NCBI RefSeq assembly: GCF_016433145.1
Contig: NC_058135.1
Location: 296,086,205 to 296,150,204, forward strand
Direction: 5' to 3'
Source of the DNA: Gracilinanus agilis
Lineage: Eukaryota
DNA: 64,000 nucleotides
In this document: in pieces, positions 20-55,584 of the stretch
Layout of the letters: every line of letters starts with the position of its first letter
How positions within the stretch are numbered: the stretch's first letter is position 1
The notes under the pieces: generated by a model
Told to the model about the DNA's origin: nothing
Database searches by the model: none
Seen by the model: only the letters and a program-made list of their open reading frames with translations
Program-made: the position numbers and the translations under genes

Positions 20-1260
20 TCTGTCTTTCACGATGAGGTCCTAATGGGGAAAAGAAGTGAAAGTAATGCAAGAAGAAAATGGTTTTAAAATCAAAATTGG
101 TCAACTGAAAAAAGAGGCCAAAAAAATCCAAGGAAGAAAAGAGTTCCATGAAAAACAGAAGGGGGGCAGCTGGGTAGCTCAGTGGATGGAGAGCCAGGCC
201 TAGAGATGGGAGGTCCTGGGTTCAAATCCGGCCTCAGACACTTCCCAGCTGGGTGACCCTGGGCAAGTCACTTGACCCCCATGGCCCACCCTGACCACTC
301 TTCCACCCAGGAGCCAATACACAGAAGGGTTAAAAAAAAAAAAAAAAAAGAAAACAGAAGGGAACAAATGGAAAAGGAGAATCAAAAATGGAAGAAATTC
401 ATTCTTTAAATAATGGCCTCATCGGATTTGAACTAGATCATGCAGAGTGAAAACAGAAAGTAAGAAAGGACATGAAACGTCAGCATTTGGGGTTATATAT
501 AAAGAATCACTTTCTGGACAGAGCAGAGGGGAAGTGCTGTAAGAGGGAGGGAGAGGAGCTGGTGTTTGGAGTGGGAGGGCATACAATTAACCTGGATATT
601 CTCTTCAGAAACAAAAGAGCCGAGGCTCGGATGTCAACATGTCCCTCCATGTGCAGAGACTGTTCTCTTTTCATTATGAGCCTCCTTGCCTTGTCACTAA
701 GAGTTAAGTCATTAGTAATGGATCAATATATATTTCTGGCATTATCGCAGTAGTTAGACGTATACATATTCAGAGGGTGTGATATTAAGCTGTTTAAGAT
801 GATATAAAAAATCTAGGGGAGAAAAAGAGGACGTGAAATGGGAAGAGAAGTAAAATGGAGTAAATAATATCATATAAAAAGAGGGGGGAGGGGGAGGGGG
901 AACTACAGTGGAAGGGAGGATGAGAGTGGTGACAGGTAATACTTAAACTGCACTCTCATTGGAATTGGCTCAAAGAGGGAAGAACAGCCAGATTCATTGG
1001 GGTAAAGAATCCAGCCTCATCCTATAGAGAAATAGAAGGGGAATAAGAAAGGGAGTGGTGAGAAGGGGAGTCATATAAGGGAGGGAGAAGTTGGGGTAGG
1101 GGGTGATTAAAAGAGCCTGTAGAGAGATAGGGGGGAATAAGAAGTGTGCTGGTGGAAAGGGGAGTAATATAAGGGAGGGGGGAATGGAGAAGGGAAGAAT
1201 TTATGATCAAACAAGAGATAGAGAAGATTACAAGATGTAAAAGGAATAATTTTGATTATA
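20..1260 (+). mobile_element. Decayed L1 (ORF1 coiled-coil region and inter-ORF spacer), interrupted by a SINE
   Basis: A-rich, ORF1-like sequence flanks the SINE. A purine-rich spacer resembles the L1 spacer at 8200-8800. Confidence 0.55.
162..350 (+). mobile_element. SINE1_Mdo-type CORE-SINE
   Basis: Full length with A tail. TSD AAAACAGAAG. Confidence 0.95.
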
Positions 1261-1389
1261 TTAAATTTAAAAGGTTTTATACAGAGACTGACTACTTTGT
1301 GAAACTGAAATACCCTTAAATCTAATCTTCACTTCAAACTGCAAACAAGTCAAGGCATCACCACCCCATGACATAATTGGTCCTCTTTA

Positions 1390-2960
1390 TTTTTTAAACT
1401 AAATTAAATTTTCCTTAATTATATGTAAAGAACAATTTCCAATATTTTGAAAAGAATTCTGAGCCTCAAATTCTCTCCCCTCCCTTCCCTCCTACTGATT
1501 TGGTAAACAATCTGATATAGATTTTACATGTCCAATCATGTGAAACTTTTTTTTTTTCCATATTAATCCATTGGTGGAAGGAAACTCAACTAAAAATTTA
1601 AGAAAAAGTGAAAAAAAGTTTGCTTTGATCTGGATTCAAATTCCACCACTTCTTTCCCTGGAAGCAGATGACATGTTTTACTAAGAGTCCTTTGGAATTG
1701 TTTTGGATCATCCTATTGTTGAGAATAGCTAAATGATTCACAGTTGTTCATAGAAAAGTATTGCTATCACCATGTACAATGTTCTTCTGGTTCTGCTTAC
1801 TTCACTCTGCTTCAGTTCATGTAAGTCTTTCTGGTTTTTTTCCGAGTTCCTCCTGCTCATCATTTCTTGTAGCACAATAGTATTCCATACAAGGATATAC
1901 CAAATGTTATTCAATAATTCTTTATTAAATGGTATCCCTTCACTTTCCAATTTCTTGTTCCCACAAACAAAATTGTTTTAAATAATTAGGTCCTTCCATT
2001 TTTTAAAATTTCTGTGCATTTATTTCTATTTATTTTTCTTTTCATTCCTCAATTGGAAATTGAGGGGTTGCACATAAATTGAGGAATGGCTACACAAGCA
2101 GTGATATTTGATTTTAATGAAATACTATTGTGCAATCAAAAGAGGAAGCAGGATGATTTCAGAAATACAAACCTAGTAATGGTGTTGCTGAGTCTAACAG
2201 CCTTTTGGACCTAGGTTTGAATTGCTCTCCAGAATGGTTGAATCAGTTCACAACACCCCCAACAATGCATTAGTATCTCAACTTTCCCATATGCTTTCTA
2301 ACTTTTGTCATTTTCTTTTCCTTTTGTAATAGTCAATCTGATTAGTGTGTGGTGAGACCTGAGTTGTTTTAATTTGCATTTCCTTAGTGATTTTAAAGCA
2401 TTTTTGCATGATAACAGAAAGCTTTAATTACTTTGTCTCAGAACTGCCCGTTCATGTTCTTTGACTTTTTATTGACTGGGAGGGGGTGCCTTGTATTCTT
2501 ATATTTTTTGACTCATTACTCTTATGTATTTGACAAATGAGGCCTTTATTAAAGAGACATAAATGTTTTTACCATTGTAATCACTGCGCCTTACTCTCTA
2601 GCCTATCCCCTCCATTTATCCTTTTCACTCTCCTTTCATTTTATCCATTCTAAAAGTTTACAGCTTCTGATCCCCACATTCCCCAATACTGCTCTATTTA
2701 ACTTCTCCCTGCATTAGTTCATAAGTATTTCCCCAGCTTTCACTGAAACCATTCCTTTCCTCATTTCTTATGGCACTATTTTATTCTCTTACATTTTTAT
2801 GTCACAATTAGCTGAGCCATTTCCCTGATTACTGGGCACCTCCTTAGCTTCCATTTCTTTGATTCTCTAAGAAAAGCTATCATCAATATTTTAGAGAATA
2901 ATAATATTATTCTCTAAGAAAAGTTATCATCAATACCATCAATATGGATCCTTTCCTCCC
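1390..2960 (-). mobile_element. L1 3' end (ORF2 C-terminus and 3' UTR) fragments
   Basis: Contains TGTACAATGTTCTTCTGGTTCTGC and GAATTGCTCTCCAGAATGGTTGAATCAGTTCACA, typical antisense marsupial L1 3' motifs. Confidence 0.85.
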
Positions 2961-3374
2961 TCCTTTGATCTTTGCAGAACAGTCCTGGTAGTGGCCTTGC
3001 TTCCCGGAATGAGTAGATCAACAGAAAGCTTCCCCAAGAGCGGAGGGCGTGTTCAACAATCCCCCGGGTCTGATTAGACAATGATGTTCCACTGGAGCCT
3101 CTTGATAAAACTTATCTGTTTTCAGTTTCCTCAGGATTTCCAGAACAGAGAACACAAAGGCATCTCCAGATCAATTTATCTAGCTGGGCCCCATTTCTTC
3201 ACATCAGATCTATGCCATCTGCCATGGGGGAAATTGGGGAGTCACCCCTTCTCACTCCTAGAGATTGTGGTCAATGTTAGCAGTCTGGGTTTTCCAGTGA
3301 GATGTGGGTACTCAGTCCTACTCCCCTCCATAATCCCTTCCAAAATGTCTCCCAGAAATAATGAAGGGAACCAT

Positions 3375-3826
3375 TTCAGTAAAATTTTGGAAAGTTTATA
3401 AGAACTGATTCAAAGAGAAGTGAACAGAACAAAGAGAAAAAATTATACACTAGCAACGCTTAAAGATAACTTTGAAAGATGTAAGAACTCTAACTCGGAT
3501 AGGCAAAACTCTGGAGGAGTCCAGCGATGACAAAGACTACCTACATTCTAACAGAGAGATGATGGACTCAAAGACATTTTTTGGATGTAGTCAATAAGGA
3601 AATTACTTTTGCTAGAGCAAATCTATTTGTTACAAGAGTTGTTTTTCTTTTCTTTTGTTTTTTTCTTTCCCAATTGTATCCGATCAGAACAGAAAGGAGG
3701 GGGAAAGGCTTTTTAACTGATTTTTATTTAAAAAGAAGACTACTGAGTGAGTCTCTTTAAGCTATTATTTATATTGTAGGGAAGGGGAGTGTATCTAGGA
3801 AAAAATGATATAAAAGACAAAGATGG
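3375..3826 (+). mobile_element. Old L1 3' UTR fragment
   Basis: Contains GAACTGATTCAAAGAGAAGTGAACAGAACAAAGAG, homologous to the other L1 3' copies. Confidence 0.6.
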
Positions 3827-3827
3827 A

Positions 3828-4021
3828 GGGGGCAGCTGGGTAGCTCAGTGGATTGAGAGCCAGGCCTAGAGACGGGAGGTCCTAGGTTCAAATCCGGCCT
3901 CAGACACTTCCCAGCTGTGTGACCCTGGGCAAGTCACTTGACCCCCATTGCCTACCCTTACCACTCTTCCACCTATCAGTCAATACACAGAAGTTAAGGG
4001 TTTAAAATACAAAAAAAAAAA
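3828..4021 (+). mobile_element. SINE1_Mdo-type CORE-SINE
   Basis: TSD AAAAGACAAAGATGG. Confidence 0.95.
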
Positions 4022-4617
4022 AAAAGACAAAGATGGCAATAAAAATATTTAATAAAATAAAATATGATCAAATGCCCAATAACATAAAAAAAGAATCCCT
4101 CTGATTTTCCTAAATGAACTTTGGATCATTCTGAAAAGAGAGACAGAAGTCAATTTCATTGCTGGACAGTCCACTCTAATTCCAGTTTAATCTTCTTTTT
4201 AGAAACAGATCCTATCCAGTTAGTTCCACAGAACCTCATATCGCTATGACTTCACTGCTTCATGTCCCTTTTAAATCTCCAGATATGAACTGAATAACTT
4301 CAGTTCTTCATTTTTAAAAAATTTCTCTAATTCCTTTAGATATTGAGAATGGAAAGGTCTTAGAATCTATTCCTCTTTCCCTGGTTTGGGATATGTGAGC
4401 TCACTGCTTGAAATAGTTTATCCCTACCACTAACGGATCCCCATGCACATTCTCATGGAGCCATGAGACATAAGAGACATGGAGAGGTACGGAGATAATT
4501 CCCCTGAGAGGACACTTTTCACTAATTCTGAGCTCCAACTGGTCAGTTTTACTATACCAAAAGCCACAGCAACTTTTCCAAGCTCTTAATACTTGCACTT
4601 CATTTCACATCAAATAC

Positions 4618-4809
4618 TCTTTTTTTTTTTTTTTAACCCTTGTACTTCGGTGTATTGTCTCATAGGTGGAAGATTGGTAAGGGTGGGCAATGGGGGTCAA
4701 GTGACTTGCCCAGGGTCACACAGCTGGGAAGTGGCTGAGGCCGGGTTTGAACCTAGGACCTCCCGTCTCTAGGCCTGACTCTCACTCCACTGAGCTACCC
4801 AGCTGCCCC
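4618..4809 (-). mobile_element. SINE1_Mdo-type CORE-SINE
   Basis: TSD TCACATCAAATA. Confidence 0.95.
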
Positions 4810-5649
4810 TCACATCAAATAAGCTTACGGACAGCCCTACATCCAGACAGAAGAGCCACACTTCCAGGTCAGTCTCCCCAGGTCTGACTTTTCTTCAGGA
4901 TGGGTTTATCCCTTCTATCCCGGAGGTTTCTTTGTTACTCTTTGGGATTGTGGTGAGTAGAGTAATCAAGGTGTGGGTTCCCAGGATTTGGGGAGACAAT
5001 TCTAAGGGAATCATGGAGAAATGAAGAAGTGCTTCTTCTCTTCCCTTCCCCACTCTCTTAGCTCAGCATTAGTTCCCTTTACATTAACTTCTTTGTATCC
5101 TCTATTTCAACTGTCCTTCCTTCTCTCTGTGCATGTAGAGGACAAGACCAATTAGTTTAGCAGGATGGGTGAAAGAGTCACTCTCAGCTCATGGTAAAAA
5201 GCTGAATAATCTGAATGGAGGGGGTCATTTTACAGATATCAGTCTTCAGCAGAACGTGTAGACAAAATTTATATCTGGTTCCTCTCTTCCCTTACGCATT
5301 TCAGGAATCTGTTTAACAACGCTGTCTATCTTTTTAAAATTATAAAAATTTAAGAGTTTGCAAAGGGTTTGGTGACACTTTCACACAATTCAGACATCCC
5401 TTTTATGCCCTATAAATCCCACAGCTCTCTCTTGGGCCTCCCTCATCTCATGGGGGAGGGGAGGGGGGGAGTAATCATTAATGACAAGGCTAGTACTGTA
5501 GAGCAAGAGTTGGCATGGACCTCGGAGGAGATGAATGATTCTCAATCCATATCAACTCTTTTTTTAGTAATAATTACATGTCTTTCAAGATTGTTCACAA
5601 AAATTCTATTACCATTATAAAGCATTACCATCGTAGTGTACAAAAGGGC

Positions 5650-5840
5650 AGCACTTCAGTATTTAAAAGGCTGACAATTGGAAGATGGATCAGTCTTGGA
5701 CTTCTTGACTCCAAAAGGTAGAACACAAAGAGGAATGGTTAGAATTTACTAAAATAAAATTGTGGCTTGCTATCAGGAAACACTTGCCAACAATGTTTCT
5801 ACTCTCTTCTACTCTGGAACATAGTAGATTCCCCCTCATT
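5650..5840 (+). mobile_element. L3/CR1 3' fragment
   Basis: Contains CTTCAGTATTTAAAAGGCTG...GGAAGATGGATCAGTCTTG, resembling the L3 3' region. Confidence 0.5.
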
Positions 5841-6055
5841 TCTTAGCTTTAGTCTAATCTCAGTTATCCACTTGGTGGAAATATATTGGAGTGGTTTTTT
5901 TCTATGTGTGGATTAGACTAAGCGTTGTGGGTGCCCTTCTGAAATTACAATTCCAGTTTTCTGAAATAGAAACATGAAATTATTTTCTTTTTAGAGTTTA
6001 CTGATGTTGCTTTATTGCTGAGATTCCGTCTTCTACGTATTCATCCAAAAGATCT

Positions 6056-6868
6056 TTCGGAGAAAAAGGATCTGTTACTGGGATCTTCAGGTTCTTCAAA
6101 CAATTTCAAATGCCCAGTGCAGAGTACAGACGCCCTCGTGTCGCACGGTCCAATTGTCCCTTTACTGCTTCTTTCCACAAACTGTTGGGATGAAAATCTG
6201 CTGCCAAGATGACTTCAGTCAGCACTTCCACATTGGTAGGTTTGATATCCACAATATTCAAACTTCTGGCCATAATCTCAAGGTGCCAAAGATTAATTGG
6301 CAAATCATCTGTAGATAGATAACTTTCATAATCACTTCTGACAGAGATGGATTTGATGTGATACGGCTGCGCGGTGGCAAATATTCTCCTTGGTCTCGCC
6401 TCGACCATCAGAACCATGGGGCTGAACACTGGCACTCGTCCTGTAGTAACTGTTGTAGGATCTCCAGGCCGACCATCTTCTTCCTTCAAGTTCTTTGGTC
6501 TCTTTCAGATATTTGCCTTAACATTGTGGTTTTATCATTGGTAGATGATAAAAATTGAGCAGCATTTTTCTGAGGACACCACTTCATCTTGGTGATCTTT
6601 TCTACAAATTCTAAACTTTTCAAGTGGTCAAACTCAGGTTCGTGGCTCCGGAAGGTGCCGTAAACATCATATTCTCCTCTGCTGTGTGTTTGGATTTTGT
6701 CCTCCTGCTCCTGTTGGAAGATGACGTCTCTACCTCCTTCATCTCCTGTTGCTAGCGGTTCTCCAGAATGCTTAAATTCTGATGTAGAAATTATATCTGC
6801 TTCTGCCACATCATCAGTAACTGCCCCTTTCAACCTGAGAAAAACACCATTTCTTCCTCCAGCTCCTG
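6056..6868 (-). pseudogene. PPP2R2A: Processed pseudogene of PP2A regulatory subunit B55-alpha, frameshifted and 3'-truncated
   Basis: Intronless translation includes [51 protein letters not shown] and [16 protein letters not shown]. Deletion frameshifts occur near 6490, 6170 and 6845. The KIQ, QKNAAQ and DPTTVTT residues favour the A paralog. Confidence 0.93.
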
Positions 6869-6964
6869 AAGGTCCCTCTGGACTGGCCAGGCTCTCTCTG
6901 AGCCCCACCCCAGCAGCATCTGTGGCTGAGGTGGGGGGTGGGGGGGAGAGGAGACCAGCAGCAA

Positions 6965-7017
6965 AAATTAATAATAATAATAACAACAACAATAATAATA
7001 CATTTATTTATTTATTT
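6965..7017. repeat. (AAT)n(AAC)n(AAT)n and (ATTT)n low-complexity tract
   Basis: Directly visible. Confidence 0.9.
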
Positions 7018-7129
7018 GAAGGTTAAAAAAAGGAAAGAAAAACTTTTTTTAAGACTGCTGACATATGAACATGAAGATATACAACTTTAAGATAAGATGG
7101 TGGTAGTTCATAAGCAACCTTGTAATTTT

Positions 7130-7470
7130 TTAAGCAAATATTTCCTTAGGTGAGCAAAATTCTCTCCCTCTCTTCCCCTCTCCTAGAGATGGCATGCAAT
7201 CTGATACACATGTGCAATAATGTAAAATATTTTCCTATATTAGTCATTTTATAGAAAAATTAGTCATTCAATCAAAAAATGGAGAAAGTGAAATAAAGTT
7301 TGTATCAGTCTGTATTCACACTCCATCAGTTCTTTTTCTGGGAGTAGATGGCATTTTTCATCACGGAGTCCTTTGAAATTGTCTGTATTGCTAAGAGTAG
7401 CTAAGTCATTGACAATTGTTCAACAAATATTGCTGTTACTGTATACAGTGTTCTCCTGGTTCTGTAATTA
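7130..7470 (-). mobile_element. L1 3' UTR fragment
   Basis: Contains CTGTATACAGTGTTCTCCTGGTTCTG and is homologous to 1500-1800. Confidence 0.75.
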
Positions 7471-8355
7471 GCCAAATGGAAAAGGAGGTACAAGTGCTTA
7501 GTGAAGAAAATCATGTCTAAAAATTAGAATTGAGCAAGTCAAAGCTAATGACTTCATAAGACATCAAGAAACAATCAAATAAAGACAAAAGAATGAAAAA
7601 ATAGAAGAAAATGTAAACTATCTCATTGGAAAAACAACTGACCTGGAAAATAAATCCAAGAGAGATAATCTAAGAAGTATTAGACTACCTGAAAGCATAA
7701 TCAAAAAAAGAGCTTAGACATCATCTTTCAAGAAAGTATCAAGGAAAACTGCCCTGATAGTCTAGAATCAAAGGATAAAAGAGGAATGGAAAGTCCACTG
7801 AACACCTCTGGAAAGAGATCCCAAAAGGATAACTCCAGGAATATTATAACCAAATTCTAGAACTCCCGGGTCAAGGAGAAAATATTTAAAGCAGCCAGAA
7901 AGAAACAATTCAAATATCGTGGAGTCACAGTCAGGATAATAGAAGATTTAGTAGCTTCCCCATTAAAGAATTTTAGGGCCTGGAATATGATATTCCAGAT
8001 GACAAAGGAGCTAGGATTTCAACCAAGAATGACTTACCCAGCAAAACTGGGCATAATCATTCAGGGAAAAAATGGGTATTCAATGAAATAGAGGACTTTC
8101 AGACATTCCTGATGAAAAGATCAGAGCTAAATGGAAATTTTGACTTTCAATTCAAGACTCAAGAGAATAATAAAATGGTAAAAAGGGAAAAAAATCAAAA
8201 GACATTCAGTTAGGTTAAAATTCATCCCTCCTTGGGAAGATGATATGTGTAATTCCTAAGAACTTTATCATTATTAGAGCAGTTAGAAGGGAAATACTTA
8301 GAAGGCAAAGGTGTGAGTTGAATATAATGGGATGATATCTAAAAAAAATTAAATG

Positions 8356-8495
8356 GACGGGAGGTCCTAGGTTCAAAGCTGGCCTCAGACACTCCCCAGC
8401 TGTGTGACCCTGGGCAAGTCACTTGACCCCCATTGCCCACCCTTACCACTCTTCCACCTAGGAGCCAATACACAGAAGTTAAGGTTTTAAAAAAA
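8356..8495 (+). mobile_element. 5'-truncated SINE1_Mdo-type
   Basis: TSD AAAAAAATTAAAT. Confidence 0.9.
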
Positions 8496-9075
8496 TTAAA
8501 TTAAGATGCATTGGAAGGTGGGAGAAAGAAGAAATAGAATGGATTAACTTATAATAAAAGAGACATTAAAGGGGAGGGGGATATCAGGAGGATAACACTT
8601 GAATCTTATTCTCATCAGAACTGGCTTAAAGAGAGAAGAACATACACAATCAAGTGGGTATAGAAATTTATTTTACCCTACATGAAAGTAGGAGGAGAAG
8701 AGGATAAGGGAAGGAGTGGGGCTGACAGAAAAAAGGACAAATTGGGACATGTGGTGCTCAGAAGCTAAACATTTTTGAGGATGGACAGAATGAAAGGAGA
8801 GAGGAAAGGATAAACAAGGGATGAAATAAGATATAAAGTAATACATAGTAATCATAATGGTGAAAAAATTTTATAATAAATTTCTTTAATGAAAACCTCA
8901 TTTTTAAATATGTAAAGAAATAACTTGAATGTATAAGAATGCAAATCATTCTCCAATTGATTAATGATCAAAGGATATAAATGAGAAGTTCTCAAAGTAA
9001 TTAAAACTATTGTTATGTGAAAGAATGCTCGAAATCATTATTAATTGGAGAAATGCAAACTGAAACAACTCTGAG

Positions 9076-9077
<2 letters not shown>

Positions 9078-9127
<50 letters not shown>

Positions 9128-9143
9128 TGAGAGAGAGAGAGAG
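9078..9143. repeat. (GA)n microsatellite
   Basis: Directly visible. Confidence 0.97.
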
Positions 9144-12100
9144 ATTTGGCTATTATGACAGGAAAGGAAAATTATAAAACTTGGAAGGAATGTGGGAAAA
9201 TTGAGACATTAATGTGCCATCAGGGGAACTGTGAACTGAATTAACCATTCTGAAGAGCAATTTGAACCTATATCCAAAGGACTATGAAATAATGCATGCC
9301 CTTTTACCCAGCAATACCATTGCTAGGCTAGTGTCCCAAAAATATTTTTAAGAAAGGAAGGGGCAGGACCTATATGTGCAGGGATATTTAGAGCAGCTCT
9401 ATTGGGCAGGGGGGAGGTAAAAAATTAGAAAGTGAGAGGATGCCCATCAATTAAGAAATAACTGAGTTATAGTATATGATTGTGAGAAAATACCATAGTG
9501 CTATAGGAAACGATGAGTAGAAAGAACTTGGGAAAAGCCTGGAAAGATATATATGAACTGAAGCAGAATGAAGTAAGTAGAACCCAGAGAACATTGTACA
9601 CAGAGAAAGCAATACCGTGCCATGAGAAATTGTCAATAACTTAGCTATTCTCAGCAATATGATGATCCAAAACAATTCCATGATAAAAATGCCATCTGCT
9701 TCCAGGGACAGAATTAATGGAGTCTAGATGAAAACCAAAACAGATATTTTTCACTTTCTTAATTTTTTTTTGTTTTGTTCAAGCTTTCTTCCACAAAAGG
9801 ATTAATATGGGAAAATGTTTTACATGATCACACGTGGAATTAATATCAGATTGCTTACCATGGTGGGTAGGGAGGAGGAAAGGGGGAATTCAAAATTCAA
9901 GACTCAAAATTCTTTTTAAAATGTTGGAAACTGTTTTTATGTGTAATGGGGAGAAGAGGAATAAAATAAGGTTCCCCCAAAATGAAATGGGCTACCATTT
10001 ATATGAAAACCTAGGTCATTCTTTCCCACCAATGTACTCAATATCCATAGGGAAAAGGTAGACATTTAAAATAAGAGCCTGGTTGGGAAGCAGATGAGGG
10101 AGGAAAATCCTTTTTTTTTAAGTACCTCACAAGAGCAACTACATGGTGCAGGGGATAGAGGGCTGAGTCTGGAATCTGAAAGATCTGAATTTAAATCTGG
10201 TCTCAGCCATTTACTAGCAGTGTGACCCTGGAAAAGTCACTTTACAGTATTTGCCTCTAAAGAAAGATTTTTTAAACCCTTAAAAAACAACAGAATTATG
10301 GAGGGAGGAAAAGGAAGTTTGAAAAAATAAATTACCTCACAAATAACTGAACCAATTCCTCGATTATTAACATGCTTCCACTACATCATACCAATCCCAT
10401 CCCACGGTTCCAAATCCTATGTTGCCATCATTAAAAGACCATCCTCCATCTCCCGCTTACCACTCATTCTCACTTTAGAAAGACTTCTACTCACATTAAG
10501 AGGTGACCTATTTTGAGCTCTCCTTTATGAAGCAATGTAAATTGACTGAGCTTGGAAATGCCATTTGAACATAAAGAGTTGAGGCTTTCTCTAACTGGCA
10601 ATAGTGAGCACTATAAGTCATGGAGCGAGCAGAGAAACCCTTTCAAGTGCTTCAGATATTTCTGAATAGACTGAGAACATCAAAGCCTTAGATCTCAGAT
10701 TGGGAAGTGCCTGAAATGAAAGACATTTTCTCCCTCATGGGCTTCCCAGCCAGGATCCTATAAACGCCTGCTTCCATGTCCCATGGATGTTGAATGCCCT
10801 GATGAGTGAGGAAGACCTCGCTGGACTTGCCGGGTAAGAAGAGGCAAGTCAAAGGAGAGAATAAGTAAATAGTAGCACATATATGGGAAGGGGTGTGTGT
10901 GGTCCTTGAAGAGGCTGAGTGTGAGCATAACAGGGTTCCTTTCTATTTTAACAAATCATTCTTAAGAAGAGCAGTATGGTTGATACTGTCGTTAGATGAT
11001 TTCAAACCTGAATTCTCAGGCACAAAAAAATTGTCATCAATCCTTTGTCATCGACATGGTAAGAAGCGACCAATGAAGGGTACAGGGACATCTGCTTCAC
11101 CTAGGATCTTTATAATTTTTATTAAAAGCTTCAAGACATATCTCACACTTTAAAATGTTGGGCAACACAAAGGTGGGCAACAGTCAACATTCTAAGGAGA
11201 ACAACAGGTTCTAGAACCATCTTTAAAACCTAAAAATTGGGGGCAAAAGTTGAGGAGAGCTAGGCTCCCATGAACGGGACCCTCAGACATTGATTTGGCT
11301 CGTTCTCCTGCTCTACTTAGTGGATGTGGGAGGTATGTTGTGATATTGTCTGTTCTTCTCTACACCCGGTTCTTATTGGGTTCTCACATGTGATCTTCAG
11401 ACAGGGTTTAGGGGAAGAAATGAGCAGGCAGGCAGAAGAATGGGGAGATTCAGAAAATGAAGCAATGCTTAAGGAGACCTTAAAGGCCCTCATCTTGTGT
11501 CCAGGAAAGACTCCAAATCCTTTCTTTAATCCTTAACAGTGTTCAAAGAGGCTGAGCTTGGAGTGAGCCCACGGCCACACTGACCCCTCTGTCCTACTTC
11601 TGGGATTCTGTCTGTCTGAGACAGGCTAGAAAATCAAGCAAAGGCTGATGAGAGAGGTAGGAAAGAGAAAAATCAGAGAATGATCTCTTTAGGGCCCATG
11701 CCATCCTGGAAAAGAAAAATGGCAGAATCTTCCCACAGAGGCTTTCTTAAACTGCTACACATTGGGCAACCCCACAGTTAACCTCCCTGGACTGTGAAGG
11801 CAAAGATAAAACAATACAATATGATTCCACCTGGGGGAAATGGCTTTAGTGCCTCTCTGTTCCAATCAATGTCTGAAAAAGAATCCCCTCTTTAAGATAC
11901 TTGACAGATGACCCTCTAATCATGCCCTAAGAATCCCCATTTCAACCTTTCCAATCCCCAGAAATAGTCATTTCATCTTCCCTGAGTTTCTTCTTCTCTA
12001 AGCAACACCTCCCCGTTTTCTTCAGTCTTTGTCTTATTCGAGTCACTCCATGTCTACTGATGATGTTAGGATTCAGAGGAGACACATCTGTCATCTCTGC

Positions 12101-12818
12101 AATAGAATTAAGCAACTCTTCCTGGTTTGGTCCTTTATTACTCATCCCTATTAACTTTTTTCTCTTGACTCCCATGTTTGAACTCCAGAGTTTCTAAAGA
12201 GCCCAGGTCTATTTTTTAATCAGAATTGCTTGGAAGTGTGAGGATATATGAATAAACCTAAAGACAAATTGGATCCACTGAGGAAAAGCTGCCTTAAAGA
12301 CATGTTTATGAGCTTGCTTGAAGATTTCTTTGGCAGGGCCAGAATCTCAGAATAGTAGCTCAAAAAGTACTGTCTAGCTATAGCCAAAACAAGACACCTC
12401 CCGAAAGCTCCCTTCATAATAATCCTTGAGTTGGTCATTGTTTTACTGACCAAAGAAGCTTCTGTAATGTCATGGCCAAATGAGCCAGACTCTCTTTTGC
12501 CCTAATTCCTGTGCACCCTCCTCAAGTTACTGTCAATATTCCTCAGTTGCTGGAGTTTGTGTAAATGCCTTACAAATGTTTTGGTTAAAGTCTTTTCATA
12601 AACAATTTTCTGTGAGAAAGTTACACCCCTAAGAATGACGTAATGCTTAAGAGCTTATGATTGGTCAACGATGCGGTCATGTTCTTTTTATTTGTTAGAG
12701 AAAACTTTTATATATATATATATATAGGAATGGATTCTCAATATAATTTGAACTTGTGGCAGACTCCTTGTTCTGCTCGGGCCTATCAATCTATCATTGG
12801 AACTCCTGCCTGTCCATC

Positions 12819-12842
12819 TGTGTGTGTGTGTGTGTGTGTGTG
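12819..12842. repeat. (TG)n microsatellite
   Basis: Directly visible. Confidence 0.97.
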
Positions 12843-12959
12843 AATCTTTCACTCTTGTTTGCTCGAGCTGGTTCTCGGGAGGCCTGGAACTCTATTTTTC
12901 TCGCCGCCCCTTCACTGTCGGGGCCTAGTATGGAAGTCCTCTATTTCATTAAAAATCTC

Positions 12960-13480
12960 TTTTTCCCCTTGCAGGATTATACTCAGTTTTGCTGGGTAAA
13001 TTACTTAAGACTGTAAGCCTCTGCCCTTTGCTTCTCAGCATTTTGTATTTCCAGTTCTCCACTCCTTGTAGGGGTGGCTGCTAAATCATGTGTCATCCCA
13101 ACTGTGGCTTCTCAATACTTGGATTCTTCCATCTTTGGCATTTTCAGGGTTGTTTTCCCCTTTGACCTAGAAGCTCCATAACGGTCCTGGAATTTTTATT
13201 TGGAGGTTTCTATCTAGAGGTGATCACAGGGCAGCTGGGTAGCTCAGTGGATTGAAAGTCAGGCCTAGAGATGGGAGGTCTTGGGTTCAAATCTGGCCTC
13301 AGACACTTCCCAGCTGGGTGACCCTGGGCAAGTCACTTGACCCCCATTGCCCACCCTTACCACTCTTCCACCAAGGAGCCAATGCACAGAAGTTAAGGGT
13401 TTAAAAAAATAAAATAAAATGATGATAGAGTTGATCACTACCACTACTTTGTCCTCTGGTTCTAAGAGACTTGGGCAGTT
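12960..13480 (-). mobile_element. L1 ORF1 fragment split by a SINE
   Basis: Antisense to the ORF1 segment at 7700-8060 (GGATTATACTCAGTTTTGCTGGGTAA). Confidence 0.75.
13229..13420 (+). mobile_element. SINE1_Mdo-type inserted in L1 ORF1
   Basis: Consensus head, core and tail. Confidence 0.93.
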
Positions 13481-14149
13481 TCATTTAAGAATTTTTTATG
13501 ATTATTTATTTACTTATTTCACTAAATATTTCCTAATCACATGTAAAAAAAATCAACATGATCCCTAGAAATGAGAGGGAGTTTTGCTTTGAATACCTCA
13601 GTGATCCCTATTGACCGAGGATGTCAACATTCTTGTCCCCACTCTGTCCTCCCAAACCTCTGGCTCGGAATGAATGGCCATCATGACTCCTTGACTTTTC
13701 TTCTCTTCTCAGACTGGAGAAATGCCCCATTTCTGCCTTGCTCATCAGTTCCAAAGGCACATCATTTGTCAATAAAAGGGACCTGAAGGAATAGGGGAAA
13801 AAACAAACAATCCTGACGCCTGCCGTGTCACGTTCTGGGCTGGTCGGTGACCTGGTTTGTCCTACGGTGAGCCCCTGGTGCCATATGCTCCTTCCCTCTC
13901 CATATCCCCTCTGTAGACTACCAGCTACTTCAGGGCAGGAATAGGTTCTTTGTCTTTATATTCCTAGCACCAAGCCAGGCGGTGATAGTTATTCTGGGAC
14001 CAGCATCTCCAAACAGGAAGTATTAAGCAAATGTTTGTTGCAATTTGGCACAGGAAAAAAAAAATCAAAAGATTATGTCATTTCCTCTCCTTTTCAAACA
14101 TGGATGACTGAGTATGGAATAGTGTGCATACACTGGGAGTTGGTTCACA

Positions 14150-14865: not shown

Positions 14866-15384
14866 AATTTGGGGGGGCGCCATATTGAACAACAAAAGTT
14901 ATCTAAAAGAAAAAAATTATGGATAGAAATGTTTAAGTATGAACAAAGTGGATCGATTTATGAATGAAGGAGTAAATGGACAAATAATCGCAGGCTTGCC
15001 TACCTTCATGAACAAATCAATAAAAGTCTGTCGTATTGAATCAAACGATTTAGCCTGTCCTATAGGGCTGTCCACACGAGTTACAGAAGGATCCCCAAAC
15101 CCCATGTAGTCTTCCACAGTCTAAAGGAAGAGCAGACGGGAGGGGGCAATGGAGAATGGTTTGAAGCCTGGTCAGACTTTCAGAAAGGAGAAGCATCTGC
15201 TGGAGGCTCATTTCTATTCCCCACTCTCAGGCCATGACAGGAGAAAGAAGGAAAGGGGAGAAGGAAGCAGACATTTATGAAGTGCCTACTAGGTAGATGC
15301 TGAGCATATAGCTGGGACAGCAAGGTGGCGCAGTAGCTAGAGGGCAGGCCTGGGCTGGGCTGGGAGTGAAGAAGACTCACCTTT

Positions 15385-15535
15385 GCGAGTTCAAGTCCAG
15401 CCTCCTCAGTGTGATCCTACCCAAGTCATTGGATCCTTTCTGCCTCATCGGTGGTCCATGTAGAAAATGGCAAAGCCCTCTAGCAACTTTGCCAGGAAAA
15501 CCCCAAAAGGGGTCATGGAGGGGCCCAAACAGCAA
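15385..15535 (+). mobile_element. MIR/Mar1-type SINE remnant
   Basis: Contains GAGTTCAAGTCCAGCCTC...AAATGGCAAAGCCCTCTAGC...GAAAACCCCAAAAGGGGTCA. Confidence 0.65.
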
Positions 15536-15780
15536 GAGAGCCGCCCCCGCCCCCCCTCCCCCATTCTTGCCTCCTCGCCAGGCTGCTTTTTTCAGCCTTT
15601 CTCTGGGCTGGCGCTCGAGCCTTGCCTCCCGGTAACCGCGGCGGGTTATTAATTCACGGTCGGCTCTCCGGAAGGCCTCCGTTTGGTCAAAGGCGGGCGG
15701 AGCCAGTCTGGGGGGCCTGAGCGGGGCGGGGAGGAAGTGGGGGCTGGTTTTCCCAGCAGATCGCGGGCTGGGCCTGGTGT
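15530..15780. promoter_or_regulatory. CpG-rich candidate promoter (GC boxes, ETS sites)
   Basis: CCGGAAG at 15668, GGGCGG at 15695, GGGGCGGGG at 15723, GGAAGT at 15733 and CCGCCCC at 15541. Start of a CpG island spanning the MRGPR CDS. Confidence 0.5.
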
Positions 15781-16112
15781 CCGAAAGCCTCACCCGCACG
15801 GCTTCAGGCGAGCCCTCAGCCCCTTACGGTGGGCCCCGTCCGCCTCCGTTTCCTCCTCTGTCAAGCGACCTGGAGAAGGAAATGGCCCGGCTCGCCGGTG
15901 TCTCGCCCCAGAGAACTCCACGTTGGGTCAAAGAGAGCCAACGGGCCCGGCACTGGCCTGAACGCCGTCTAAAGGCCCTCGCGAGCGATTGAGAGGCGCG
16001 CCGCGGCCCGTAGCGGTCGAGCTTCCTCCGCCCTTCGTGCCGGGCCCTGGGGCGCCCCCTGGCGGCGCCCGCGCGGAGGGTCGCTCTGGCAGCCTCGGAG
16101 GAGCCGCCGGGC

Positions 16113-17036
16113 ATGGCCGAGTTCTCCGTCCCGGACCGCAGCAGCCCCGCCGAAGGCTTCACGCTGTACAAGTGGCTGGGGGGCGTCGTTCTGCTCGTCG
16201 CGCTGCTCGGCCTGCTGGGGAACCTCCTGGTCCTGTGGCTGCTGGGCTTCCTCATCCGCAGGAACCCCGTCTCCGTCTACGTGCTCAACCTGGCCGCGGC
16301 CGAAGCCCTCTTCCTGTGCGGCCACTCGGTGCTCTGCTTGGGGGACCTGCTAGACTACTTCGAGCGCTCCCCCGCCTGGATGGGCGTGAACGACATCACC
16401 GAAATGGCCTACTCCGCCGCCCTGAGCCTGCGGGCGGCCACCTGCGCCGAGCTCTGCCTCTCGGCGCTCTGCCCGCGCGGCTACCGGCGCCGGCGGCCCC
16501 AGCACACGTCGACGGTGGTGTGCGGCGGCCTCTGGGTTCTGGCCTGCCTGCTGCTGGGGGGGCACTTTCTGTTCTGCCTCAGCGACCAGGACAGCCATTT
16601 CTGCAACCCCATCATCATCGGCCAGATGGTCCACTTCTTCCTCTTCACCGCCCTGCTCTTCCTGGCCAGCCTCGCCATCGTGCTGAAGGTCCAGTGCAGC
16701 GGCCGGCGCCGGCGGCGGCCGCCCAGGCTCTACCGCCTGGCCCTCATCATGGCCCTCGTGTTCCTGCTCTTCGGCCTGGCCCCCGACATCGAGCATTTCC
16801 TGGAGACCTTCGGCATAGACGTCCTCGTTCCCCTCTGGCTGCCCACGCTCCTGGCCAACTTGAACTGCAGCGCCAACCCCGTCCTCTACTTCGCCCTGAA
16901 CCGCCGCCGCCGCAGGGGCAGGAGGGGGAGGGAGCCGCTCCGGCGGGTGCTCCAGAGGGCCCTGACCGACGAGCAGGACCTGGAGGGCGACGAGAGGGAC
17001 GCCTCCCACACCACCACCTGGGAGACGTCCTTCTGA
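16113..17036 (+). CDS. MAS-related GPCR (MRGPR family), subfamily unassigned, 307 aa, single coding exon
   Basis: Intact ORF with good Kozak context (ggcATGG) and 7 hydrophobic segments. MRGPR hallmarks: GNxLVLWLLGF, RRNPVSVYVLNLA, RRPQHTSTVVC, TM4-TM5 Cys pair (FCLSDQDSHFC), NCSANPVLYF and EPLRRVLQRAL. Confidence 0.93.
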   Translation: MAEFSVPDRSSPAEGFTLYKWLGGVVLLVALLGLLGNLLVLWLLGFLIRRNPVSVYVLNLAAAEALFLCGHSVLCLGDLLDYFERSPAWMGVNDITEMAYSAALSLRAATCAELCLSALCPRGYRRRRPQHTSTVVCGGLWVLACLLLGGHFLFCLSDQDSHFCNPIIIGQMVHFFLFTALLFLASLAIVLKVQCSGRRRRRPPRLYRLALIMALVFLLFGLAPDIEHFLETFGIDVLVPLWLPTLLANLNCSANPVLYFALNRRRRRGRRGREPLRRVLQRALTDEQDLEGDERDASHTTTWETSF

Positions 17037-17439
17037 ACCCGGCCGCAGGGGCGGCGCCCTCCTGGGGCAGAGCCGGGCCTCCACCTCCTGCCCTGCCCTT
17101 GGCTTGGTGCCCAGGCCCCGAACGCCCAGCCAGGAGCGAGCATCTCTTCGAAGAACTCTGCACAGATCTCCCGGAACCCTCACGGTATCCCCGGGGGCGG
17201 AGAGGGGGGCACATGCGCTCATCGGGCCCATCTTACAGTTCAGGAAACTGAGGCAGGTAACGGTTCAGGCACTGCCCGTGGCCCCCAAAGCTAGGCGGTC
17301 CCTGAAACTGGATTTGAACTCAGACCTTTCTGACGGCAGGCCTAATGCTGACCGTTCTGATAGAAATTCCTTGGAGACTGTCTATTAATTGATAATTATT
17401 TATATTATTTAGTCTATATTATAGAATTTTATATTCTAT

Positions 17440-17940
17440 TGGTTATATGTTATGGTCTTATAGTGTTTCATTCTATTTCATTATTATAATTATAGTGTGT
17501 TATAGTTTATATTGCATTCTTCATGTATTCTATAGTTCATTAGTAGGAGTTGGAGTAAGAGAGAATCCCAAAGTCAGCTGGCCACACCTAACCAGTGTGA
17601 GTTTGCAGAGCTTGTCTCCAAGGAGCCAAAAAGCCCAAAAAAGACTTCACTTCCTCAGTCCCCTCCCTTATAAAGGCATGGGGGCACCCCTTCTGGATCT
17701 CTCTGGATCTCCTTCCAGGTCAAGGGCTAGTCTTCCAGATGCCAAGAGTGCCATGGGACCAGGGGCCAGCTTCTTCCAGGATGCCAGGAAGCCATGAGGC
17801 CGCTGGCATGCTCCCAGAGCACAATGTGCTCCCCAGGCAAAGGGGGGAGCAATGGATTTTCAAAGGAATAAGGGGTCCGATTTCTATTTAATTCCCTCAA
17901 TCCCCCCTGTGATTCTCTAAGAGATGAACTGTGCTCATCT
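17440..17940. mobile_element. LTR-like element related to 20620-21340
   Basis: Shares CTGGCCACACCTAAC and AAGCCCAAA...CACTTCCTCAG blocks with that element. TATAAA near 17670. Confidence 0.4.
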
Positions 17941-17958
17941 CCTCAAAGAACCATCCCA

Positions 17959-18190
17959 GGGGGTAGCTGAGTAGTTCAGTGGATGGAGAGCCAGGCCTAG
18001 AGATGAGAGGTCCTGGGTTCAAATCTGGCCTCAGACACGTCCCAGCTGTGTGACCCTGGGCGAGTCACTTAACCCCCATTGCCTAGCCCTTACCGCTCTT
18101 CTGCCTTGGAGCTAATACACAGTATTGACTCCAAGACAGAAGGTGAGGGTTTTAAATTAAACTTAAATTAATTTAAATAAATAAAAAAAA
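17959..18190 (+). mobile_element. Long-tail CORE-SINE (SINE1/MAR1-type)
   Basis: Near-perfect TSD AAAGAA(C/T)CATCCCA. Confidence 0.92.
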
Positions 18191-34336: not shown

Positions 34337-35326
34337 ATGGAGCCGGGCCCCGGAGACCAGGTTCCCGTGTTCTCGGCTTGGCCTTATGCGGACGGGAACC
34401 GGACGGAGGGCATGAAGTACGTCATGAACAAGAACGAGGAGGAGGAGGGGGTCGTCTTCAACATCTTCATCCTCGCCCTGACCGAGCTGGCGGGGCTGGG
34501 CGGCTTGGTGGGGAACGGCCTGGTCCTCTGGCTCCTGAGCAGCCACGTCCACCGGAACAACTTCTCCATCTACCTCCTGGACCTGGCCAGCGCCGACTTT
34601 CTCTTCCTCTGCTGCCACATGGCCATCGTCATTCCCGAGACCCTCCAGGACCGCTTCAGCTTCCCCCACTACGTCTACGACAGCCTCCTGGCGCTGAGGT
34701 TCTTCTTCTACACGGTGGGCCTGAGCCTCCTGGGGGCCGTCAGCGCCGAGCAGTGCGCCGCCTCCCTGTGGCCCGGCTGCTACCAGCGCCGGCGGCCGGC
34801 CCACACGTCGGCCGTCGTGTGCGCCCTGCTCTGGGCTCTCTGCCTCCTGCTGCACTTCCTGTCCTACGGCACCTGCGGGGAGCTGTCGGGCGGCAACGCG
34901 GGCACCCTGTGCGGCCACATCGGCTTGGCCAGGGTGGCCTTGCTCGGCCTCCTCTTGGCCTGCATGTGCGTGTCCAGCCTGGTCCTGCTCGTCCGCACGG
35001 AGTGCGGCTCGCCGCGCCGCTGGCCCCAGAAGTTCTACAGCCTGGTTCTGTTCCTCGTGCTCACCTTCCTCTTCTGCGGCCTCCCCTTCGGCATCTACCG
35101 GCTGTCTCTGAACTGGCTGCACATCCCGGACTATTACTATTACCTCAGTGTGCTCATGGCCGCCGTGAACAGCGCGGCCAAGCCGCCCATCTACTTCTGC
35201 GTGGGCAGCCCGCGGCCAGGCGGCTTCCGGGAGCCCCTCAAGACCGTCCTCTTGAGAGCTCTGGGGGACGAGGAGGAGCTGGCCGAGAGGGGAGAGATGC
35301 TGGACACGGGCCCCGTGGACATGTAG
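34337..35326 (+). CDS. MRGPRE: MAS-related GPCR member E, 329 aa from the ATG downstream of the splice acceptor
   Basis: Matches MRGPRE-specific segments as I recall them from the human protein: FNIFILALTE, LWLLSSHV, CCHMAIVIP, LRFFFYTVGLSLL, EQC, FCGLPFGIY, HIPDYYY, MAAVNSAAKPPIYFC, RALGDEEEL and C-terminal GPVD. The ORF-track extension from 34121 lies upstream of an acceptor at 34302-34303. Confidence 0.92.
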   Translation: MEPGPGDQVPVFSAWPYADGNRTEGMKYVMNKNEEEEGVVFNIFILALTELAGLGGLVGNGLVLWLLSSHVHRNNFSIYLLDLASADFLFLCCHMAIVIPETLQDRFSFPHYVYDSLLALRFFFYTVGLSLLGAVSAEQCAASLWPGCYQRRRPAHTSAVVCALLWALCLLLHFLSYGTCGELSGGNAGTLCGHIGLARVALLGLLLACMCVSSLVLLVRTECGSPRRWPQKFYSLVLFLVLTFLFCGLPFGIYRLSLNWLHIPDYYYYLSVLMAAVNSAAKPPIYFCVGSPRPGGFREPLKTVLLRALGDEEELAERGEMLDTGPVDM

Positions 35327-53582: not shown

Positions 53583-53724
53583 TGCTTAGTCATTTCTAAG
53601 CTGTGACTTCCCAGAGGCCTTGCCAACTGGTGCATTGAGCATTCTACAGCCTTGCTGGAATGGAATCCCCTAAACTTCTTATGCTCTTCCCATGAGCTGG
53701 TTCAAAGGAATGGTGGTGGGAATG

Positions 53725-53870
53725 GAGAGAAAGAGAGGGAGGAGGGAGAGGAAGGGAGGAGGGAGGAAAGAAAGGGAGGAGAAGGGGGAAGACAGAGACC
53801 AAGAGGAGGGGAGGGGAGGGAAGGAAGAGGGAGGAAGGGAGGCAGAGGGGAAAGAGAGACAAAGAGAGGG

Positions 53871-53939
<69 letters not shown>

Positions 53940-53949
53940 AGAGAGAATA
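53725..53949. repeat. Polypurine tract ending in (GA)n, running into the gap
   Basis: Directly visible. Confidence 0.95.
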
Positions 53950-54590: not shown

Positions 54591-54625
54591 ATAGGCATAT
54601 TGTAGGCAGTGACTGAGCTTCCATG

Positions 54626-54640: not shown

Positions 54641-54735
54641 GCGGTCCGAGGGTCCGTGGCGCCCGTGCAGTGAGTCTGAGGACATCCGGGGGAGCGGGAG
54701 GTCGTCTCCTCCATGATTTCTCTGGCCTGAACAAG

Positions 54736-55584
54736 ATGCTGAGTTTCTGGAGTGTCCTCAGTGGCAGAACTCTCTACGTGGCCCTCTTCTCCCTCACGGT
54801 GCTCATCGGCCTGGGGGGGCTGGTGGGCAACGGCCTCCTGCTCTGGCTCCTGGGCTTCCGAGTGAAGAGGAGCCCCTTCTCCGTCTACATCCTCCACCTG
54901 GCCGGAGCCGACTTCCTCTTCCTGGGCTGCCAGATTGTGTTCGCCGTCCTGACCTTCACGCGGGGCTCGCAGCCCTTCTACGCGGTGGTCTTGTTCCTCT
55001 GGTTCACGGCCGGCCTGGGCCTGCTGGTGGTCCTGAGCCTGGAGCAGTGCCTGACTGTCCTCTTCTCCACCTGGAGCCACCGCCGCCCCCAGCACACGTC
55101 GGCCTGCGCGTGCGCCCTGGCGTGGGCGCTGTCCCTGCCGCTGGTCTTGGTGCCCAGCAGCGCCTGCGGCTTGCTGACAGGGGGCGGCTCGTGGCTCACC
55201 TGCTTCCAGTACCACGCGGTGGGCACCGTCTGCTTGTTCCTCCTCTTCTCTGTCCTCTGCGTGTCCGGCCTGATCCTGCTGGTCCGAGTGCAGTGCTGCT
55301 CCCAGAGCGGGCCTCCCTTCTACTACTTCAGCCTGCAGATGGTCCCCCTGTTCTTCTTCTGTGGCCTCCCCTTCCTCGTCTACTGGGCCTTAATTAACAC
55401 CATGACCTTCATCGTAACCTTTTTTTCTAACTTCCTGTTTGTCGTGGAGTTCCTGGCCTGTGTGAACAGCACCACGAAGGCCCTCGTTTACTTCTGCGAC
55501 GCCGGCCACCGGCGGGACCTGCGAAGGGCCTGGGCCAGGGGAGGGAAGAGCAGGTTCTCCGAGGCCCTGGAGATGACGGCCTGA
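54736..55584 (+). CDS. MRGPRG: MAS-related GPCR member G, 282 aa
   Basis: Very short N-terminus. Motifs LTVLIGLGGLVGNG, LHLAGADFLFL, short TM3 with FLWF, PSSACGLL, CFQYH, FFCGLPFLVYW and LACVNSTTK resemble human MRGPRG. Lies downstream of MRGPRE on the same strand, as in eutherians. Confidence 0.85.
   Translation: MLSFWSVLSGRTLYVALFSLTVLIGLGGLVGNGLLLWLLGFRVKRSPFSVYILHLAGADFLFLGCQIVFAVLTFTRGSQPFYAVVLFLWFTAGLGLLVVLSLEQCLTVLFSTWSHRRPQHTSACACALAWALSLPLVLVPSSACGLLTGGGSWLTCFQYHAVGTVCLFLLFSVLCVSGLILLVRVQCCSQSGPPFYYFSLQMVPLFFFCGLPFLVYWALINTMTFIVTFFSNFLFVVEFLACVNSTTKALVYFCDAGHRRDLRRAWARGGKSRFSEALEMTA

Follow-up and report, generated by a model that had tools for sequence, protein, structure and literature searches.

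A 64-kb window of the genome of the opossum Gracilinanus agilis (64,000 nucleotides; source assembly given as GCA_016433145.1, chromosome of 299 Mb) carries, at 16113..17036 on the + strand, a single-exon coding sequence (307 residues plus the stop) for an atypical receptor of the MRGPR family. MRGPRs are receptors for itch, pain and mast-cell responses, and their activation departs from that of textbook class A receptors. Sequence comparisons indicate that the element is a functional protein-coding gene of didelphid opossums, orthologous to Monodelphis XP_007497848.2. Its product combines Glu at position 2.50, Arg at 3.43 and Leu at 3.50 with a strongly acidic outer face and an Arg-rich inner face, and we assign a probability of about one half to the full explanation, that of a constrained didelphid receptor with a re-set activation switch.

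An intact MRGPR gene

The gene is a single open reading frame (ORF) that runs from ATG to TGA without interruption in the ORF listing and translation of the window. The start codon, the first ATG after the upstream stop, lies in a strong Kozak context, with G at both −3 and +4, and the encoded protein is identical to an entry already predicted by NCBI/UniRef. A Logan contig of 2,507 nt, from a run that is probably of the same animal as the assembly and so brings no independent biological support, covers positions 15488-17994 without gaps, at single-copy depth and with zero differences within the ORF, which argues that the ORF is not an assembly slip.

The AlphaFold2 (AF2) model of the protein (predicted local distance difference test score (pLDDT) of 85.3 and predicted template modelling score (pTM) of 0.83) contains seven transmembrane (TM) helices, comprising residues 13–47, 52–80, 87–119, 132–155, 164–196, 205–232 and 242–267, followed by helix 8. 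The top Foldseek matches are MRGPRX2 and MRGPRX1 (TM-score of 0.81–0.84), and the top 29 are all MRGPRs or MAS1. Among solved structures, the best match is MRGPRX2 (2.7e-41), followed by a chain titled MRGPRE, and by MRGPRD, X1, X4 and MAS1.

Position 6.48, which is invariant or nearly so in the alignments, is occupied by G221; Gly or Ser in place of the Trp toggle switch at this position is a trait of the MRGPR family (PMC13266011). C155 and C164 (16575..16604, +) align with the TM4–TM5 cysteine pair of MRGPRX2, which in this family takes over from the disulfide between TM3 and the second extracellular loop, and would form a disulfide here too; position 3.25 holds W89 rather than Cys. The NPxxY motif is present as NPVLY (16875..16889, +). 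Two residues usual in the family are replaced. Arg3.50 of the E/Q-R-C motif gives way to ELC, and is not strictly defining, as MRGPRE and marsupial MRGPRG have EQC; Asp2.50, present in all other relatives examined, is Glu in the Gracilinanus protein and in Monodelphis. The gene is a clear MRGPR by its fold, phylogeny, G6.48, cysteine pair and NPxxY motif, and it lies outside the X, D, E and G subfamilies. ORF, homology and fold thus bear out the uninterrupted 307-residue MRGPR proposed in an earlier reading of the letters made without database searches (the sequence-only reading). The loss of Arg3.50 (here L114) is a trait of atypical class A receptors, uncoupled from G proteins or acting as decoys; the other marks of such receptors, a lack of G-protein activation by bound ligand and arrestin recruitment or scavenging, would be predictions for the target.

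A marsupial-only receptor lineage

The only clear orthologue is Monodelphis XP_007497848.2 (annotated 'MRGPRX2-like'), a colinear protein of 305 residues with 61% identity, in which the first and last residues match and all three alignment gaps are in-frame. In a HMMER search of 1.8 billion representatives, the score falls from 404 bits for this protein to 209 bits for the next match, and the six top representatives after the orthologue are all marsupial 'X-like' proteins, in agreement with the marsupial-lineage receptor that had been proposed. The Monodelphis protein shares E2.50, R3.43, the ELC and NCS motifs and the Arg tracts. The changes at 2.50, 3.43 and 3.50 are therefore older than the Gracilinanus–Monodelphis split, and the odd residues are not recent damage.

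Three trees were computed: a quick tree of 68 rows, a careful tree of 42 rows, and a careful tree of 47 rows that included true MRGPRD, MRGPRH and MRGPRF together with monotreme and bird sequences. All three join the opossum pair with a support of 100/100 on a stem of 0.86–0.88. The pair is nested in marsupial-only clades (support of 99/97 and 100/99), where it falls in a polytomy with didelphid and australidelphian paralogues, and it is separate from the eutherian X/A/B clade (100/99 in the 47-row tree). In approximately unbiased (AU) tests, a grouping with MRGPRE plus MRGPRG (p = 0.001), with eutherian X/A (p = 0.0006) and with true MRGPRD (p = 0.003), the sequences of which carry QRC, was rejected in each case. 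The sequence-only reading had suggested a relic of the X/D-type lineage; the AU rejections and the marsupial-only clade contradict this, and no orthology to the X, D, E or G subfamily was found. An origin within didelphids, with other didelphid paralogues, is not rejected (AU p = 0.41). A clade with Trichosurus XP_036621210.1 (P0209) and Sarcophilus XP_003774324.1 (P0211) is not recovered in the trees and not rejected by the AU test (p = 0.115), so that a didelphid-only gene and an older one are both compatible with these tests.

The trees indicate that the marsupial genes labelled 'X-like' by NCBI form a clade of their own, restricted to marsupials, and are not orthologous to the X genes of humans. 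The searchable literature yielded no account of either this gene or a marsupial-only MRGPR clade; the only such group named in an Ensembl survey is the placental-plus-marsupial 'MRGPRH' (PMC6504862). The receptor has so far been found only in American opossums, and its protein prediction is already public.

Residues of the receptor core

Residues were numbered by alignment to MRGPRX2 and by 63-sequence family alignments, and approximately 78 relatives were examined at the core positions; the features described here were placed by alignment or translation and all lie on the + strand. E64 at 2.50, within LAAAE (16302..16304), is encoded by GAA; codons that end in A are rare in this gene, the GC content of which at third codon positions (GC3) is 0.96. 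Glu at 2.50 is the only core change unique to the opossum pair, and was found in none of the approximately 78 other MRGPRs. R107 at 3.43, within LSLRAAT (16431..16433; codon CGG), lies in the middle of TM3 in the AF2 model, at a position that is Leu in 95% of the family, and recurs once among the relatives, in Sarcophilus P0014. In E113-L114-C115 (3.49–3.51; 16449..16457), ELC replaces the family ERC (R3.50L). Arg3.50 is also lost, as EQC, in every MRGPRE and every marsupial MRGPRG examined, and the MRGPRG of one bat (Molossus) has DLC. Most eutherian MRGPRG sequences have ERC, and position 3.50 is unusually labile across the E/G pair. The segment F220-G-L-A223-P-D225 (6.47–6.52; 16770..16787) keeps G6.48 and has the Pro moved to 6.51 (P224). 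P6.50 is absent from MRGPRF too, and both F6.47 and C7.46 (here C252) are also present in other paralogues.

Arg-rich stretches are found in intracellular loop (ICL) 2 (R125–R128; 16485..16496), in ICL3 (R198–R202; 16704..16718) and between TM7 and helix 8 (residues 264–273; 16902..16931); the RRRRP of ICL2 is common to the target and MRGPRE. Y5.58 and W4.50 are intact, as are G6.48 and NPxxY, and the QRAL of helix 8 is kept. The tail keeps a Ser/Thr cluster and ends in WETSF (17019..17033), which is the same in Monodelphis, fits the class-I PDZ-ligand pattern (S/T-x-hydrophobic) and is a predicted PDZ ligand. All of the motifs listed in the sequence-only reading (LAAAE, ELC, the TM3 Arg, FGLAPD, the Arg tracts, the cysteines, NPxxY and QRAL) are present. 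Its description of the residues as unusual stands for E2.50, which is unique; it carries less weight for the loss of R3.50, R3.43, F6.47 and the ICL2 RRRRP, which, like C7.46, recur in relatives.

Charge pattern and the ligand side

The opossum pair has the most acidic outer face and the most Arg-rich inner face among the 63 sequences scored. The extracellular net charge is −10 in Gracilinanus and −8 in Monodelphis, compared with −1.3 ± 2.9 in 61 relatives, and the intracellular Arg residues number 25 and 22, respectively, compared with 13.9 ± 3.0 in the same relatives. The Arg enrichment goes beyond composition, because the equally GC-rich MRGPRE (GC3 of 0.95) has only 10 intracellular Arg residues.

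The conserved outer acids lie at TM2–extracellular loop (ECL) 1, at position 3.33 and at TM6–ECL3. Acids at the top of TM3 and in TM6–ECL3, in place of those at the MRGPRX2 sites, had been noted, and both parts of this observation agree with the alignments: X2 E164 aligns to Gly, and X2 D184 to a gap (structure match) or to Ile (family alignment), leaving neither with a counterpart. The placement of the outer acids suggests that cationic ligands are bound at sites other than those used by X2, and a different pharmacology and atypical signalling are plausible.

Selective constraint

Identity between the orthologues declines across five classes of family conservation, from 85% where at least 90% of the family agrees, through 71%, 59% and 59%, to 38% in the most variable class (chi-square p = 1.2e-5), and the differences avoid family-conserved columns (Fisher odds ratio of 3.6, p = 8e-6). 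When the actual sequence was allowed to drift neutrally to an amino acid difference of 39%, corresponding to approximately 0.25 substitutions per site, the ORF stayed stop-free in 1.3–2.0% of the runs; the simulation was composition-aware and ignored indels, and the openness of the ORF is to be read with the caveat that frame +2 of this GC-rich stretch is also stop-free. GC pressure raised GC3 to 0.96, yet the GC content at second codon positions (GC2) stays at 0.45, as in MRGPRE and MRGPRG.

Between the target and its Monodelphis orthologue, the outer half is 49% identical, compared with 71% for the inner half (p = 1e-4); this contrast is weaker in the X1-like orthologue pair and absent from the MRGPRE pair. 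Departures from highly conserved columns number two in Gracilinanus and three in Monodelphis, a balance that argues against decay in Gracilinanus alone, and the orthologues have kept the same start codon and the same five C-terminal residues. The tip branches of the target pair (0.37–0.50) make it the fastest of the orthologue pairs compared, with 0.13–0.25 for the X1-like pair and 0.07–0.09 for MRGPRE. The class identities, the simulation and the outer/inner polarity support a gene that is intact, as had been proposed, and constrained rather than drifting. These measures indicate that the gene is under purifying selection in both species, after a burst on the stem that fixed E2.50, R3.43, L3.50 and C7.46, and that its extracellular, ligand-facing half is still diverging quickly.

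A proposed re-set activation switch and its alternatives

The highly acidic outer vestibule would suit cationic ligands, for example basic peptides or amines. Within the core, the buried R107 would lie one helical turn below the level of the sodium pocket, on the inward face of TM3 to which position 3.39 also belongs, and would probably pair with the lengthened acid at 2.50, the extra methylene of Glu aiding the contact. A tethered E64–R107 charge pair of this kind would replace both the sodium site and the hydrophobic lock, and L3.50 would remove the Arg that normally touches Gα. The likeliest outcome would be a re-set switch, with a core of high basal activity or in a 'pre-activated' state, and an output in which classical G-protein coupling would count for less, and the conserved Arg-rich loops, the Ser/Thr-rich tail and WETSF for more (through arrestin, a PDZ scaffold or scavenging).

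Altered coupling or activation is inferred by analogy with characterized receptors. The L3.43R substitution raises basal activity 3- to 10-fold in TSHR, FSHR and LHR, the hydrophobic lock of which includes Leu3.43 (PMC5136658), and R3.50L is a feature of the G-protein-uncoupled C5aR2 (PMC5494583). In MRGPRX2, all responses are lost with R127H (3.50), the surface expression of which is approximately 50%, and D75N (2.50) leaves no activity (PMC13266011). Literature searches on D2.50E and on the 'DLC' of C5L2 returned nothing.

Several points weigh against a constrained receptor with a re-set switch. Constraint was measured at the protein level and by neutral simulation, in place of codon-based dN/dS. 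The 39% amino acid divergence is close to the level given by approximately 0.25 neutral substitutions per site, and many sites must therefore be under weak constraint or under positive selection. Gracilinanus alone lacks P6.50 (P6.50A), the Monodelphis segment being CGLPPE, and the Pfam 7tm_1 score of 21 bits is below the cut-off of 30.5, which marks the sequence as unusual. The one public run with the locus is apparently of DNA, and none is listed as RNA. The E64–R107 contact is a probable one, deduced from the positions of the two residues. Finally, L3.50 by itself does not predict uncoupling, because loss of R3.50 is common in MRGPRE and MRGPRG and MRGPRE is reported to respond to an agonist (PMC13494238).

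The main rival to a re-set switch is a conventional G-protein-coupled MRGPR, in which the motif changes are tolerated or compensated within a plastic family and only ligand specificity differs from that of the paralogues, an account that we regard as possible but somewhat unlikely. It gains from the EQC of all MRGPRE and marsupial MRGPRG sequences examined and the DLC of one bat MRGPRG, and from human MRGPRE, which has EQC (PMC13266011) and has since been paired with a proposed agonist (PMC13494238). Glu for Asp at 2.50 is a conservative exchange, Sarcophilus P0014 combines R3.43 with D2.50 and ERC, and the intracellular half is the better conserved, with its NPxxY, G6.48, Y5.58 and W4.50 intact. 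The same observations on MRGPRE and marsupial MRGPRG, together with the MRGPRE agonist, weaken the non-G-protein signalling that the sequence-only reading had drawn from R3.50L. Conventional coupling is opposed by R3.50H, which kills MRGPRX2 signalling (PMC13266011), and by the activating effect of L3.43R in three further class A receptors (PMC5136658). Also against it is E2.50, found in none of the approximately 78 relatives, and the combination of changes has been kept in two species, which suggests that it is important.

Relaxed constraint, with the gene an incipient pseudogene and its ORF surviving partly because GC-rich DNA seldom yields stops, is quite unlikely. The rapid tip branches, the sub-threshold Pfam score and the loss of P6.50 in Gracilinanus are compatible with it, as are the stop-free frame +2, in which a 420-residue ORF overlaps the gene, and the apparent DNA origin of the only run with the locus. 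Against it, the differences shun family-conserved columns (p of approximately 1e-5), the ORF stays open in approximately 2% of neutral runs even before indels are counted, the three indels are in-frame, the two ends of the protein (start codon and final five residues) have been retained, and GC2 has resisted GC pressure. A decayed-looking Gracilinanus paralogue, P0223 (ECC, NPxxY lost, branch of 1.69), is quite different.

That the 'rewiring' and the Arg tracts are functionless by-products of GC-biased gene conversion at a recombination hotspot is very unlikely: a GC3 of 0.96 within flanks of 41% GC, a Gly+Ala+Arg+Pro fraction of 0.29–0.30 (family mean of 0.23) and the GC-raising L-to-R change at 3.43 (CTG to CGG) would fit, but MRGPRE at nearly the same GC3 has 10 intracellular Arg residues against 25, the derived states are identical in both species, no tract of conversion from MRGPRE or MRGPRG stands out (best 20-codon window of 0.81 for target–MRGPRE compared with 0.82 for MRGPRE–MRGPRG), and two of the three core changes, E64 (GAA) and L114 (CTC), run counter to GC pressure, so this process is not their cause.

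A possible positive charge near the 2.50 acid in related receptors

A basic residue that would lie near the acid at 2.50 occurs in several members of the marsupial-only clade, as R3.43 with E2.50 (didelphids), R3.43 (P0014), K7.45 with Y7.49 (P0209) and R7.46 with Y7.49 (P0211). Sarcophilus P0014 ('A-like') has R3.43 in LSLRAAI and keeps D2.50 and ERC, so the buried Arg3.43 arose at least twice in this clade. Trichosurus P0209 and Sarcophilus P0211 are sisters (98/91), both with N7.49Y and a basic sodium-pocket residue (K7.45 and R7.46, respectively), and the tail of P0209 ends in ...RETSF, comparable to the WETSF of the target. These two proteins may be australidelphian counterparts of the target lineage, with a second route to a positive charge by D2.50. 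A broader and rather doubtful proposal is that a tethered positive charge by the 2.50 acid is a recurrent device, of which the target would be the fullest case. Its buried E2.50–R3.43 ion pair would stand in for the sodium site and L3.50 would uncouple the G protein, giving a naturally evolved receptor for cationic peptides that is constitutively 'switched' and biased towards arrestin or a scaffold, or else a scavenger.

Gene neighbourhood and base composition

The orthologues of MRGPRE and MRGPRG follow the gene in the same orientation, with 17 kb separating it from them, and these three are the only MRGPR loci that a tblastn search detects in the window, each on the + strand. The second in order is the MRGPRE orthologue (34337..35326, +; 329 residues, EQC), with an identity of 86% to Monodelphis, 73–77% to australidelphian and 51–56% to rodent MRGPRE. 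The third is the MRGPRG orthologue (54736..55584, +; 282-residue NCBI model, ORF opening at 54670, EQC), with an identity of 67–73% to australidelphian MRGPRG. Both were assigned by homology and trees. The eutherian locus is not known to hold any MRGPR besides MRGPRE and MRGPRG, and the extra intact MRGPR that had been proposed for the opossum locus is confirmed.

A GC- and CpG-rich island (15000..17250) covers the presumed promoter and the exon, with a GC content of 0.61–0.69 and a CpG observed/expected ratio of 0.66–0.79, compared with 0.41 and 0.19–0.26 in the flanks. GC3 is 0.96 in the atypical gene, 0.95 in MRGPRE and 0.91 in MRGPRG, with a GC2 of 0.43–0.45 in all three. The three MRGPR exons form sharp, exon-sized GC3 spikes amid approximately 41% GC, with CpG ratios of up to 0.79. 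Two further ORFs overlapping the gene, of 420 residues in frame +2 (15989-17251, +) and 293 residues on the opposite strand (16350-17231, −), are Pro/Gly/Ala/Arg-rich and were rejected as artefacts of GC composition.

High-copy repeats flank the gene, the contig depth rising from approximately 20 to 14,000 and to several million at 15468-15584 and 17925-18158. Just upstream of MRGPRG, at approximately 53650-54610, long 'ORFs' that extend through an N run, an assembly gap between GA-rich and TG-rich low-complexity DNA, are artefacts. In the 10-kb flanks of the Monodelphis orthologue, a + strand gene with a 268-residue product starts approximately 9.7 kb downstream and may be an upstream exon of MRGPRE.

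The paralogue P0223 (Gracilinanus XP_044538001.1, 'X3-like'), which looks to be decaying, lies on the same chromosome as the window and has NPxxY replaced by HPFLS. Its accession is near those of P0003 and P0004 (XP_044538004, XP_044538007), so that more members of the marsupial MRGPR clade may be clustered close by on that chromosome. Koala P0219 ('A-like') groups with Tamandua and Orycteropus sequences in a therian clade (support of 98–99) apart from the eutherian X/A/B and marsupial-only clades, and this clade may be an overlooked old MRGPR lineage. P0042 (UniProt W8W3J4, Papio hamadryas 'MRGPRE') clusters with Pongo MRGPRG (support of 98) inside the eutherian G clade, and by its sequence is probably a mislabelled MRGPRG. 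The solved chain titled MRGPRE (PDB entries 8yfs_R and 9ust_R, an MRGPRE–Gq–scFv16 complex) has ERC rather than EQC and matches rodent MRGPRE at 155 bits, compared with 178–181 bits for X4, D and X1; these features speak against a mammalian orthologue of MRGPRE, and the chain was dropped as a comparator for Q3.50.

Comparison with known receptors

This wild-type receptor, kept in two opossums, unites L3.43R, elsewhere known only as an activating disease mutation, with a unique Glu2.50 and the loss of Arg3.50. It is a natural test case for receptor activation and not a new gene type, a compact experiment of nature on the interplay of sodium pocket, hydrophobic lock and DRY-type motif, and it is directly testable in Monodelphis, a laboratory marsupial. 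The separate marsupial clade matters when marsupial data are carried over to human MRGPRX2 biology.

The nearest comparison is with the marsupial 'MRGPRX-like' paralogues (Monodelphis XP_001370450.3, Gracilinanus XP_044538007.1 and Trichosurus XP_036621210.1), which belong to the same clade (support of 99–100) at an identity of 42–47%. They share with the target a single exon, the cysteine pair, G6.48, NPxxY and the QRAL helix 8, and the Trichosurus protein also has an ...ETSF tail. All of them have D2.50, however, and nearly all L3.43 and ERC, whereas the target has a stem approximately three times longer and far more extracellular acids and intracellular Arg residues. Human MRGPRX2 (PDB entries 7s8l and 7vdh), the solved receptor that matches best (TM-score of 0.83, 39% identity), is considered to engage cationic ligands by means of acidic residues in its pocket, as the target may do. 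It is not an orthologue by the AU test, has D2.50, L3.43 and R3.50 where the target has Glu, Arg and Leu, and carries E164 and D184, in contrast to the TM2–ECL1, 3.33 and TM6–ECL3 acids of the target.

MRGPRE and MRGPRG resemble the target in locus, strand, extreme GC3 and loss of R3.50 (as EQC), and MRGPRE also in its ICL2 RRRRP; unlike the target, they form a separate clade, keep D2.50 and L3.43, evolve 2–5 times more slowly and are conserved across therians. Outside the family, C5aR2 (C5L2) and the atypical chemokine receptors offer a parallel in the Leu that replaces R3.50 in an otherwise intact class A receptor (PMC5494583), and C5a receptors are among the nearest non-MRGPR relatives of the target. 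C5aR2 differs in its altered NPxxY and short ICL3, whereas the target keeps NPxxY and has an Arg-rich ICL3. The L3.43R constitutive mutants of TSHR, FSHR and LHCGR have this very substitution in the hydrophobic lock (PMC5136658); in their case it is a disease mutation and the receptor has D6.44, whereas the opossum receptor has a fixed wild-type Arg, Phe6.44 and E2.50 as the likely partner. Taken by these analogies, the receptor may on its outside be most like an X-type cation sensor, and on its inside resemble C5aR2 or the L3.43R mutants.

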